Shown in pieces: positions 32,697 through 63,923 of a DNA stretch of 64,000 bases. How positions within the stretch are numbered: position 1 is the stretch's first letter; each line of letters begins with the position of its first letter. The position numbers and the translations under genes are program-made. Under the pieces are notes generated by a model, which saw only the letters and a program-made list of their open reading frames with translations, searched no databases and was not told the DNA's origin. Origin of the DNA: Bugula neritina. Its lineage: Eukaryota > Animalia > Bryozoa. The DNA is taken from NCBI GenBank assembly GCA_964035545.1, contig OZ037773.1, positions 8,771,751-8,835,750 of the forward strand, read 5' to 3'.

Positions 32697-35536
32697 ATGA
32701 GTCATTGGAATGTTTTACTGTGTGTTCTATTAAGTGAGTATCACCAGGCTTGTATTAGACTTGTGTTGAGGTATAACTGAAATATTATAAATAATTTTAG
32801 TTTTGTCCAGTATTTTTTGCATTTTATATAAGTGAGTTGAATACAGAATTATTAATTTGTGAGAAAATATACACGGAAATAAAGCATTATTAATGGCTTT
32901 TTTGTATTAAATTCAATAATATGATGGCGTTATAAAGCTTGTGGTCATATATGTGAACAATTTGTACTCTGCAATATTTTTACTTTTTAGTTAGACAATC
33001 ACTTGTAAATTAAGAGTAAATTAAATATAATAATATAATAGTAAAATAAATTCTAATGACTTTGTAATGCATGCAGCCGGTATTTTTGCCTAGATACCTT
33101 AGTATTTATACAGAATTAAATATAATAACCTGATTATTACACCCTCATAACTACACTGCTTACTACACCCCTGTCACTCCTCCTAAATAGTATACTGCTT
33201 ACTACACTCCTGAAACTCCCCTTAACTACATTGTTTACTACACCCCTGTCACTCCCTCTAAACATACTGCTTACTACACTCCTGATACCGCTTGCAGTAT
33301 CGAGTGCAGCTGTACGAGCAGTGAAATGGGAGAACAGAGCTCACAATGCATTTGAAGCAGCGCAGTACAATGTTGCAACTAGACTTGACACTACCAAGAG
33401 AGCGGCTATCCTCAAACTGACCATAGGTGGCTGGTTGGTAAGTTTTAGCTCTCCCAAAGTTTATATGAACTAATAACTGAGTAGTTTTCATTCATGCTCA
33501 TCTTATTTTCCTCTAATTACTTTAATTCTTCTGTGCATGGGAGTTATCTGCTTTATGCTGGAATGCCTGAAAAACAACGTAATAATTATTGTTGATATTC
33601 AGTGCCTTATTACCTACAACAATTAGCTTTAGCAGGCAAACTAAAAATAGAAAGATATTCTAATTGAATTCAGTCTCATAAATTTTCAAAAGTGTTGGGA
33701 ATTTTAAGCCATTTGTAGAATATACAAATGTACATTATAAATGTAGAATATACAGGGAAGTTACCGTATTATTTTACTACTAGTTTACCACCAACTTTAG
33801 GTAAAAGCCAAATTACGTAATTTTAGTAGTAAACTTATTAATCCAAACCTCTCTGCCACCCTTTGAGCTGCAACATTTTAATAGAAAATTTTATTTTACA
33901 ATATTAAGCTATTATATAAACCATATGTGGTATGTTATACTACAATAGAATATCATATAATGCAATAATATATTAAGCTACAATGTCATTTTGCATTACA
34001 GTATTATGCTACACTGCAATAGTATGTTATATTACAATATTATTCGTATATAGCAATATAAAGCATAACAATATCATATTTCAGGAAAGTGTGTTGGACC
34101 CAAGGGTTCTAACTGACTTTGAGAAGTGTAAGCTTTCTAAATGTCCTTCTCACTCAGAAATCTACAAGGTAAGAAGTTATCTCCTCCTTCCCAGCATCCA
34201 TCTTATCCAAATTATCTCACCCAAACATTTGTATGGAATGTATAAATAAAATTCAATTATAATATAAAAAGTGCTTAGATTTGTCTAGTATAGCTACTAG
34301 AACAATTTATAGACACTTAGTATCGTATAATTTATAAAAAATATCTTCAGAAAAAAGTAAAAATTTTATCCTCACAATTATTCTCAATAAGACGATTGTC
34401 AAAAGTGTTTAAGAGAATATCACTGACTGAAATGATATATTTATAATTTGTATTTATTTTAAATTTTTTTCAAAAGATGTATTATAAAGAAATTCTGGAG
34501 ATTGAAATATTATTTGATACTGCATTTTCAGATTCCAGGACTGCTGCACACGGAGCACTTTTTCATCAGCGGCTGCCTTGACCTAGATGACGTGTTTGAT
34601 CCTCTGGACAGAGACTGGTTCCTGCTGCGTAACGAGCAGCTGATCTGTGACATGGAGGGAATCAAGTTCTTCTGCGACTCCGACAGCTCCCGCTTCACTA
34701 GTGACCCAAGTGGGGGCTTCTGCACCAGTAAGATGTCTTCACTGTTACTCCATGTTTAATAATGCATCAAAATTATACTCTCAAATAATATATGGAGAAA
34801 CTTAACTGTATTATTGAAAATTTGAGTAGTTTCCATAATATATGCCTTTCACGTAGTTGTTTATATTTTGTGCTACATTTATCTAAAAGTTGCTATAATA
34901 TTTGTAAACATTACTGAAAAGTATTTGTGCAAAACATAATTATTTTAATTTTGTATCATTTTCTACATTTTATATACTTTGTAAATATATGACAAAGGTA
35001 GCTCTACATATAAACATAGAATTTTTATATTATATGTAAAGTATAATAATGTTGCGAATTGTAATAGTTTGATATATCAGTTTGAAGTCGTTACCAAAAA
35101 CTCTGAATCATAAAAAATAAGCAGCGAATATAGTATTTTATATTTTATACAAAACTTTAGTCACATTTTTAACAATCTACTAACATTTCGTGCTCTTTAC
35201 AAAATTTTGAAATTTTTGATATGGTATAATTTATAAGCAGTTAAAAATAGTATATTAGTATAAAACAGAACATATATTAATTTACGTTAAAAGTTATAAT
35301 AATTCAAGGATAAGATATTACAATAGTGAATATGCTGGAATTATAATAATATTCTATAAACTTTCCCATTTTTGGCAGTGTTTATATTATTATTGTATAA
35401 TATATATAATTATAATGCATAAAATAGCATACATCTATTAAAATATTTTATTTTTTTTGAAGGTTCAAAAAAAGAAGTAGCTTGTTCATTGGCTAGAATG
35501 TATTCCTACTACGACTGTTACTATCACCTCTACTAA
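32697..35536 (+). CDS. Secreted Cys-rich protein, array member A (176 aa, 8 mature Cys)
   Basis: Exons 32697-32733, 33298-33437, 34085-34168, 34532-34727, 35463-35536; phases 1,0,0,1. MSHWNVLLCVLLISSAAVRA-VKWEN...ILKLTIGGWL|ESVLDPRVLTDFEKCKLSKCPSHSEIYK|IPGLLHTEHFFISGCL...DPLDRDWFLLRNEQLIC...GFCT|SSKKEVACSLARMYSYYDCYYHLY*. Confidence 0.85.
33149..33289. repeat. ~36-39-bp minisatellite (4 units, alternating variants) abutting gene A exon-2 acceptor
   Basis: ACTGCTTACTACAC(CCCTGTC/TCCTGA) cores at ~33155, 33194, 33230, 33266. Confidence 0.8.
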
Positions 35537-35936
35537 AGACATGAGAAAAGAAATTGCTATATTTCTTACTTTAAATGTTTTAAAAATGGCTGTAAACAAG
35601 TGTGGAAATAATTGATAAATATACTTGTTTTTAATGTAATTTAATGCATTTGTAGTGAAACTAGTTTTTTTGTTCTTTGTTTAAGCCAATAAACATACAT
35701 CTAGTTCACACCTCGTATACTTAGTCTTTGTTCTTATGCTACTATAGCAACTTGCAGTATGAAACAAGTTTTTGTTAAAAAAGATCAATCAATTTTATTA
35801 CGCTAGTTACTAATTATTAGTTAAAAATTTTAAGCTGCTATAGTTAGTAAATTCAGTTAATAATTGTTAATTAGAAACTAGTTGAATTAACTTAAAATTC
35901 AAATGAAAGTTTCACTTAAGTTAATGTAAAATACTT

Positions 35937-62049: not shown

Positions 62050-63923
62050 ATGGACGTAATGAAGAGTGTCAGATTTTGGTGTCTTGCTTTGGCCATAGGT
62101 GAGAACTAAAATATCAAAAAAATAATTTTAATTTATTTTGTGATTTTAATCGATTATTCTGTTTTGCATGAAAGAAGATAGTTCATACTGGTTGCTTATA
62201 TTTTATATTTTCAGTACCATACCTGCTAAAATATTTTTAATTGAGAAAGTTTTTGAGAGATTTGGGTGGTCTGCATGAAATCGACTTTTTCACTTTAGTT
62301 GTTTGAAAAGTTGACTTTTTACTTGTAAGAGCAAAATAGCTAAAAAGTTTTTTATACTCGTTATAAAAACTTCAGTCCCTAATTATTGCCCAAAAATTGC
62401 GTGTTTATAAACAAAATTGATTTATATAAGACATTTCTGTCATTATAGTTATAGCTATTTTATTTGATCATTATTATTATTTTAAATATTATTGATAATC
62501 TCAGTATAGTATAAGCATTTTAGGTTGCTGTTGTTTGGACCCGAGAGCAAAAACTTACTAGGTTATTGATGTCATACCCCAAAAAATTATTTAATTCAAG
62601 CTACTCTTCTCTATTACACTTTTTGACTGCTTGTTCCCTTGTAGTGGTGCTGGTTAGCCTATCTGCTGATGCTGCCAAGGCTGATGAGACAACCAAGGCT
62701 GCCAAGAAGGCTGCCAATGTCACTGAGGCCACCGTAGCACCGATACCGTCTTTAGAAAACTACTTGAAGGCTAATCATGGCATGTTTAAAAACATGTTAG
62801 AGGTGTACAATGCTATAAGAAAATACTTTGTAAGTTAGTGTTGTAATTATTTTCGTCAGTAGTTTTTTAGTGACAAGGAATTTTGTTGTATATTGTTATG
62901 TATATTGTTATGTATATATATATATATGTATATATGTATATATGTATATATATATATATATATATATATATATATATATATATTTAAATATATCTTTACG
63001 AGCTAGCAATTTGATTATAAATAGGTATACGAGAAACATTGTTATTTATTACTTTATTAGGTAAAGTAACTACACTGATATTTCGGGTACCACTGTACCC
63101 ATCTTCAGAGTAGCAATGAATGAAATTCAAAAATTAAATAATTTATATATATACATATATATAAACTAAATAAGTTATTGTAGAGTTTGTATAAAGATAA
63201 AGCACTGAGCTCACACATCAGGGACAAATGCACTCTGAAAACCACTGAGTGTTGGAGAGCCTCCAAGTCTCCAAAAGAAGTTGTAAGTCTCAATGTACTC
63301 ATGAAACTTTACTCTTAACATTTGTACAAGTTCTAAATAGACATTGAGTTGAACTCGAATATATAAATAGAAGTGATCATGGTCAAGTTTAAATTAATTG
63401 CAATGCTGACCCCATCTGATGTTACTCGCTGACGGTATTTCAGATTTGAAGCACATGTTTATTGCCAGCTGAGATAAAAATATATTTAAAATTTACTTTT
63501 GTTTGCGTGCTAGCAAAATGCAATTACTTACTCAAAAACCTTTCCTTTTCATTGAAAATTAAATTTTTGAATAATTTTGCATCAAGTGGACAAAATTAAA
63601 AATAAGCTTTTAATGACTTTATTTTGCCAGCTCATGTAATATACCATATGTATTGTCATGTCAGCTCATGTAATATACCATACCTATTGTCATGTGCGTC
63701 TATGTTTACCATAAGTATTATTGTCTTCAGACAGTTGAGATCTTATCTGCTCTGCACCGGCAATTCCACTGCTGTCTGGTACAACACACCCTCCTCCCTC
63801 ATGACCTGGTACAGTTCATAAACCACAACCAGAACGTAATATGTCTGATGGGGGGAATTCCCGGGTTGTGTGACTCACATGCCCACCTGGTAGATCTCCC
63901 TCACTGTTCTGACCACTGCCCAG
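62050..63923 (+). CDS. Secreted Cys-rich protein, array member H (partial; exon 5 expected beyond window)
   Basis: Exons 62050-62098, 62645-62829, 63184-63282, 63731-63923. MDVMKSVRFWCLALAIVVLVSLSADA-AKADETTKAAKK...IRKYF|SLYKDKALSSHIRDKCTLKTTECWRASKSPKEV|TVEILSALHRQFHCCL...NQNVICLMGG...PHCSDHCP|. Confidence 0.83.
62888..62983. repeat. (TA)n-rich microsatellite in gene H intron 2
   Basis: Directly visible TA/TATG run. Confidence 0.9.

Follow-up and report, generated by a model that had tools for sequence, protein, structure and literature searches.

A tandem cluster of nine disulfide-rich, predicted secreted proteins with a cytokine-like model fold in the bryozoan Bugula neritina

The window of bryozoan DNA analysed here, a stretch of 64,000 nucleotides from contig OZ037773.1 of a Bugula neritina assembly, carries eight related genes on one strand, and a ninth lies a short distance past its end. 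We see about an even chance that these nine genes, named A to I, form a tandem cluster encoding secreted, disulfide-stapled helical ligands of a cytokine- or hormone-like kind, a proposal that leans on the predicted structures of two of their orthologs. A preliminary description, made from the letters of the window, had listed A to H as same-strand genes with a common five-exon plan and had left the fifth exon of H beyond reach. Scans for open units bounded by splice signals (AG|exon|GT) recovered the same eight genes in the 64-kb window and located the missing exon outside it. The gene models are as follows.

Gene A, 32697..35536, + strand, 176 aa, 8-Cys: exons 32697-32733, 33298-33437, 34085-34168, 34532-34727, 35463-35536
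Gene B, 37229..40081, + strand, 173 aa, 8-Cys: exons 37229-37268, 37718-37839, 38019-38102, 39571-39766, 40002-40081
Gene C, 41447..43104, + strand, 172 aa, 8-Cys: exons 41447-41483, 41877-41998, 42177-42260, 42616-42811, 43025-43104
Gene D, 45317..47261, + strand, 178 aa, 8-Cys: exons 45317-45350, 45722-45846, 46214-46303, 46632-46827, 47170-47261
Gene E, 52090..54411, + strand, 169 aa, 10-Cys: exons 52090-52117 (tentative), 52339-52460, 53165-53254, 53724-53919, 54338-54411
Gene F, 55787..58122, + strand, 173 aa, 10-Cys: exons 55787-55832, 56173-56294, 56855-56944, 57646-57841, 58055-58122
Gene G, 59238..60999, + strand, 189 aa, 10-Cys: exons 59238-59283, 59543-59664, 59888-59986, 60213-60435, 60920-60999
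Gene H, exons 1-4, 62059..63923, + strand, 197 aa, 10-Cys: exons 62059-62098, 62645-62829, 63184-63282, 63731-63923
Gene H, exon 5, beyond the window: window-equivalent 64702-64778 (L007:2469-2545)
Gene I, beyond the window, 10-Cys: exons L010:769-893, 1243-1341, 1501-1696, 1937-2016

Once spliced, all nine models are open, with AG and GT at every internal junction, and the intron phases are 1-0-0-1 in 9/9 genes; the intact frames, the phases and the exon sizes and motifs first read from the window were thus confirmed. Exon 1 is a short ATG exon of 28-46 bp at the 5' end of each gene, its length always 1 mod 3. Exon 2 of B, C, E, F and G measures 122 bp, and that of D, A and H 125, 140 and 185 bp, respectively; its 3' end encodes GWL, DWM, SWF, EFF, QYL or KYF. 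Exon 3, which holds C-x4-C or C-x6-C, has three lengths: 84 bp (A-C), 90 bp (D-F) and 99 bp (G and H). The length of exon 4 is exactly 196 bp in A-F (six of the window genes, against 223 bp for G and 193 bp for H) and, with gene I included, in seven of the nine genes. Exon 5 holds C-x10-C with Y/F-x-x-C, and the products are 169-197 aa long. Gene I bears out the expectation that the array continues past the window: it starts ~1.6 kb beyond the window end, has its exon 4 ~2.9 kb beyond and spans the interval from 1.6 to 3.4 kb. Searched with a profile in all six frames, the complete 216-Mb assembly yielded nine copies of exon 4, all within the array, and none outside it.

The cysteine frame given earlier as typical of the genes, C-x4-C-x22/24-C-x23-C-x8-C-x15-C-x8-C-x10-C, proved exact in A-D, whereas E-I have ten cysteines, with CC at the third position and one more Cys placed 2-4 residues ahead of the final Cys in exon 4. 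The two additional cysteines of E-I co-vary as a pair. Identity between paralogs is mostly 16-40% (69% for B versus C), and the orthologs of I and F (GenBank KAF6037671 and KAF6037674) are 21% identical. All nine products begin with a signal-like hydrophobic core, for which the maximum of a 10-residue Kyte-Doolittle window is 2.5-3.9, and the same hydropathy heuristic found no membrane-like segment after that core in any of the nine. On these grounds the proteins are predicted to be secreted, as had been supposed.

To represent the window products, the GenBank orthologs KAF6037671 (I) and KAF6037674 (F) were folded with AlphaFold2, using an alignment of 40 rows drawn from orthologs at full length, from translated exons of the window and L010, and from distant open reading frames (ORFs). 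Confidence is given as the predicted local distance difference test (pLDDT) and the predicted template-modelling score (pTM).

KAF6037671 (I ortholog): pLDDT 84.6, pTM 0.75; helices A 37-56, B 84-99, C 106-127, D 153-173
KAF6037674 (F ortholog): pLDDT 79.8, pTM 0.70; helices A 39-62, B 84-104, C 111-128, D 154-172

Both models are all-helical, in line with the early guess of a helical protein, and have two loops of ~25 residues and one turn of ~6 residues in the order long-short-long; in the KAF6037671 model the A-B loop additionally contains two short helices. What is predicted is a four-helix bundle of up-up-down-down topology, in which the A-B and C-D loops are long and the B-C turn is short. 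Each model was scanned exhaustively, with no Foldseek prefilter, against 48,161 representatives of the PDB, with the following best matches (rmsd, root-mean-square deviation).

KAF6037671: IL-6 Z 10.2 (135 aligned, rmsd 4.0), IL-11 9.7, CLCF1 8.9, CNTF 8.7, viral IL-6 8.7, leptin 8.6
KAF6037674: viral IL-6 Z 10.0 (rmsd 3.3), IL-11 9.8, CNTF 9.7, CLCF1 9.4

The next rows for KAF6037671 are IL-27, IL-31, LIF, OSM, IL-23p19, IL-12p35 and interferons. Of the 50 best rows per scan, ~40 are helical cytokines or hormones, including all of the first 23 for KAF6037674 (cytokines without exception). The structural alignments extend from helix A through helix D and cover the whole mature chain. The top Foldseek rows are IL-6, LIF, GH, G-CSF and IL-11, with a probability of up to 0.9 and a TM-score of up to 0.63. 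The modelled resemblance to cytokines is structural only and moderate in Z. Since the predicted fold is that of the long-chain helical cytokines, the broad list of functions first considered for these genes narrows toward a signalling ligand, which the models make the most likely entry on that list.

Mapped onto the predicted fold, exon 1 and the start of exon 2 would supply the signal peptide, and the remainder of exon 2 would form helix A, closing on the aromatic motif. The A-B loop, including a small C-x4/6-C disulfide loop, would come from exon 3. Helices B and C would be encoded by exon 4 together with the C-D loop, and helix D by exon 5, with two cysteines eleven residues apart on one helix face. 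Because the ends concerned share poles in an up-up-down-down bundle, one bridge would run from the end of B to the start of D and another would tie together the ends of C and D, with a further staple in the C-D loop; in E-I, a fifth bridge would join the B-C turn to the C-D loop. Acting as ligands, the proteins would contact a cell-surface receptor through their helix faces, possibly by way of a class-I receptor and JAK-STAT, and the old duplications would have produced a ligand repertoire with differing specificities.

JAK, STAT and class-I cytokine receptors are widespread among animals. In the bryozoan genome, the STAT DNA-binding domain STAT_bind scored above the Pfam cut-off at two loci (G000:C4:3714168-3714910 and G000:C5:11198359-11198481), as did a JAK-type FERM_F2 exon (G000:C1:14547879-14548130), which indicates, at the level of domain matches, that a JAK/STAT pathway is present. 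A weak match to Lep_receptor_Ig was judged spurious, as it lies beside a CNOT9-like exon with neither fn3 nor WSxWS nearby. A Domeless-type receptor is older than the protostome-deuterostome split (PMC12284397), and CRLF3 is a class-I receptor conserved in all major eumetazoan groups that has no known endogenous ligand (PMC8063046).

An orthologous array stands in the same order in the published B. neritina assembly, where it is split between two scaffold ends. Synteny is kept upstream, with ZFPL1 (PF25993/PF25998) preceding the ortholog of A there too (L017); the RING/B-box-like exons of the ZFPL1 ortholog in the window lie at ~28516-29305 (+), just 5' of gene A. The GenBank orthologs, all entered as 'hypothetical protein', are KAF6037671 (I), KAF6037673 (G), KAF6037674 (F), KAF6037675 (D) and KAF6036102 (A). 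Three of them, KAF6037671, KAF6037673 and KAF6037674, independently give the same five-exon products as our models of I, G and F. KAF6037675, on L016, reproduces exons 1-3 of gene D and skips the end of exon 4, and KAF6036102 agrees with the 5' exons of gene A, matching exons 1-4 before it ends at the scaffold end. The GenBank annotation omits gene E, although its five exons are intact in that assembly (L015:6126-8517), and it truncates or mis-splices C (113 aa), D (by the skipped exon 4 end) and H (119 aa).

Every orthologous exon that could be tested is open and gap-free at 84-97% identity, with the exception of a 6-nt indel in exon 1 of I, and no internal stops were found in the orthologs. 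Exons 1-4 of gene A are 89-96% identical to those on L017, without gaps, and the ortholog of gene B is represented by exon 5 alone, at a scaffold start. The exons of gene C are 88.5-90.5% identical to their orthologs (L001/L016) and free of indels, whereas its introns are 71-88% identical and contain indels. In the ortholog of gene E, the position aligned to the exon 2 acceptor reads AC instead of AG, and for this reason the exon 1/2 boundaries of gene E are the least certain of the set. Over 1,402 codons (Nei-Gojobori method), the synonymous divergence (dS) is 0.28 and the nonsynonymous divergence (dN) 0.05, for a pooled dN/dS of 0.18; by gene, the ratio is 0.17 in A, 0.21 in C, 0.12 in D, 0.10 in E, 0.20 in F, 0.27 in G, 0.10 in H and 0.30 in I. 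Copy number is the same in both genomes wherever the two are comparable. Judged from these sequence comparisons, the window genome and the sequenced B. neritina are sibling lineages within the Bugula neritina complex, all of the duplications are older than the split of the two lineages, and all nine genes are under purifying selection, so that the old expansion under selection envisaged at the outset finds support. Given that the orthologous exons are open and the pooled dN/dS is 0.18, we take A-I to be functional genes; an orthologous array with gap-free open exons and this ratio likewise excludes a chance origin of the pattern.

The preliminary description could match the proteins to no known family and took them to be lineage-specific, and broader searches agree on both counts. 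An exhaustive hidden Markov model (HMM) search with an exon-4 profile against 1.84 billion representative proteins gave 14 matches, consisting of Bugula proteins (160-188 aa where full-length) and a few ORFs on AT-rich metagenome contigs, and no arthropod protein. Pfam had no family for the exon-4 peptides or for five full-length proteins (E up to 10), save sub-threshold, unrelated matches (GBD_Y3, SNaCT8 and others) that we rejected as chance. A profile search of the sequences of all PDB entries found no cytokine, and its matches to eL40 and pyruvate kinase (E 0.04-1) were also set aside as chance. A word-indexed homolog search returned nothing beyond Bugula proteins, the feature and shape searches of the ESM Atlas gave no usable neighbour, and a scan of metagenome contigs with closer alignment revealed no relative (near-identical genomes possibly being outside the set). 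No paper naming the GenBank or UniProt accessions was found in the literature searched. The exon-4-like ORFs lie on metagenome and Logan contigs of 32-37% GC (L011-L014; ENA ERZ27264286, ERZ27264258, ERZ23499014 and SRR25569787), with an exon-5-type motif downstream on the longer contigs L011 and L012 and an exon-3-type motif upstream on L012. These ORFs are more distant members of the family, the hosts possibly being other fouling bryozoans. The family thus appears, as far as sequence searches reach, to be an orphan confined to bryozoan-like genomes.

Among characterized ligands, the closest comparison is with the IL-6/gp130 family (IL-6, IL-11, CNTF, CLCF1, LIF, OSM and viral IL-6, together with leptin and G-CSF). 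Its members are likewise secreted proteins of ~150-200 residues, and the predicted Bugula bundle aligns with them over 114-135 residues, through helices A-D, at Z 8.5-10.2. Genes of the IL-6/gp130 type have five exons, with a single intron falling within the stretch for the signal peptide and three in the mature portion, and Bugula genes A-I match them in exon number and intron placement (PMC13081863). A further likeness to IL-6 and G-CSF is the small disulfide loop within the A-B loop, which in the Bugula genes comes from the short phase-0/0 exon 3. In IL-6 and G-CSF this loop is C-x5-C. Unlike the IL-6/gp130 family, the Bugula proteins have 8 or 10 cysteines, of which helix D holds two, show no detectable sequence similarity to its members and occur in a lophotrochozoan; the C-x9-C signature of IL-6 and G-CSF is absent from the spacings of A-I. 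It seems to us unlikely, if far from negligible, that the proteins are true, extremely diverged homologs of the IL-6/gp130 class and the ligands for an orphan class-I receptor, Domeless/gp130-like or CRLF3-like, which would in turn drive JAK/STAT.

To our knowledge, helical cytokines outside the chordates are firmly known only as the Unpaired ligands of insects. In Drosophila these ligands of Domeless (Upd1-3) are secreted, predicted to be helical-cytokine-like and orphan in sequence relative to vertebrate cytokines, and they form a small linked family; they are about twice as long as the Bugula proteins and lack the cysteine framework described here. The Bugula proteins resemble Upd1-3 in being invertebrate candidates for secreted ligands, orphan in sequence and encoded by linked genes (for background on the Unpaired ligands, see PMC12284397). 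No similarity to Upd surfaced in the general searches, which included no direct comparison with Upd sequences.

Class-II cytokines (interferons and the IL-10 family) are also helical, secreted and encoded by five exons, and they reached Z 6-8.9 in the scans. For KAF6037671 they scored below the gp130-family rows. Their intron phases are 0-0-0-0 (preprint 10.64898/2026.05.30.728932), unlike the 1-0-0-1 found in 9/9 of the Bugula genes, and the class-II gene plan was rejected on this difference. A structure-based screen reported no secreted proteins with the interferon fold in non-chordate invertebrates (preprint 10.64898/2026.05.30.728932).

Several observations weigh against the proposal of cytokine-like ligands. 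The Pfam and PDB profile searches revealed no sequence link to any cytokine family. The last intron of the Bugula genes is in phase 1, whereas the phases of IL-6-type genes are probably 1-0-0-0, with the last intron in phase 0. An exon-by-exon search of the genome, which is insensitive, gave no match to IL6Ra-bind as a sign of a class-I cytokine receptor, nor to FERM_F1 and Jak1_Phl, two of the three JAK-specific models. The Z-scores of 8.5-10.2 fall short of ~13, the caution line of the tool, under which helical bundles may share their arrangement only, and the Foldseek E-values are ~1 for both models. The two models rest on one shallow 40-row alignment with many exon fragments and are thus not independent; a single-sequence model of KAF6037671 from the ESM Atlas is poor (pLDDT 0.44). 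The proposed disulfide pairing was deduced from topology. Finally, the only public run that contains the window DNA is a DNA run from a heterozygous individual, whose contigs span the introns and show no joints, so that transcription and splicing of A-I rest on conservation and on the independent GenBank models.

With a substantial minority chance, in our estimate, the proteins are instead secreted four-helix bundles whose likeness to cytokines is convergent and which are not receptor ligands. They could then carry small hydrophobic molecules, act as antimicrobial or defence proteins, serve in larval settlement or adhesion, or form part of the cuticle or skeleton. Expansion in tandem accompanied by deep divergence, here 16-40% identity, is typical of defence and effector families too, but a dN/dS of 0.10-0.30 denotes steady constraint, unlike the arms-race pattern common in defence effectors, and copy number has stayed the same in the two genomes. 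The missing sequence link, the moderate Z and the undetected class-I receptor all suit convergence, as do the 4-5 disulfides, which exceed those of most vertebrate helical cytokines. An up-up-down-down bundle with two long crossovers is nevertheless rare outside cytokines and hormones, and the match lists consist almost purely of cytokines.

It is improbable that the cytokine-like topology is a modelling artefact, the true structure being another helical, disulfide-rich fold such as an up-down bundle or a two-lobed domain. The shallow and partly fragmentary alignment, the non-significant Foldseek E-values, and the low score of the single-sequence model, together with the empty Atlas shape search, speak for this alternative; on the other side, two paralogs with no more than 21% identity yielded one and the same helix map at pTM 0.70-0.75, and confidence was consistent across four or five of the five models. 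Furthermore, the long-short-long loop pattern follows from secondary structure alone, and the extra Cys pair of E-I, which we place in the B-C turn and the C-D loop, makes geometric sense only where the C-D loop extends along the whole bundle. A reading of A-I as decaying or mis-predicted genes from which no protein is made is very improbable, for although the one public run with the window sequence is of DNA, all nine frames are intact, the recovered orthologous exons are open, the splice sites are conserved, the exons are free of indels and dN/dS is 0.18.

Under the proposal of cytokine-like ligands, the novelty first claimed for the family is reduced in one respect, in that the predicted fold is of a known kind, but it persists in others: the match is structural only, at moderate Z, and it falls in a phylum without described ligands of this type. 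An IL-6-type ligand class would be new for this branch of animals, in which none has been described. The cluster offers concrete candidate ligands, with which the origin of helical cytokines and their use in a colonial lophotrochozoan become testable. True homology would place a class-I helical cytokine with a five-exon plan in the bilaterian ancestor and would provide the cytokine receptors of non-insect protostomes with their missing ligands. Convergence would still leave a new disulfide framework on a four-helix scaffold.

Some further features of the array and its sequencing data were noted. A second haplotype is visible in the DNA run across window positions 57945-58773, in the spacer between F and G, where 20 substitutions and 3 small indels over 826 bp make it ~2.4% different; that run also has contigs identical to the window. 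In exon 4 of gene G, an in-frame tandem duplication at 60270-60320 repeats the peptide T-D/H-N-T-S-H-A-D and adds 9 residues in the B-C region, and the same 9-residue repeat insertion is present in the B. neritina ortholog KAF6037673. One intron stands out in its composition.

Gene B intron 3, 38103..39570, + strand: ~1.47 kb, almost pure (CA)n

Repeat-derived ORFs occupy 38025-39674 around this intron, with a GC skew of -0.78 in 38001-40000. A (GT)n-rich tract lies in intron 1 of gene I, at roughly 280-700 of L010.

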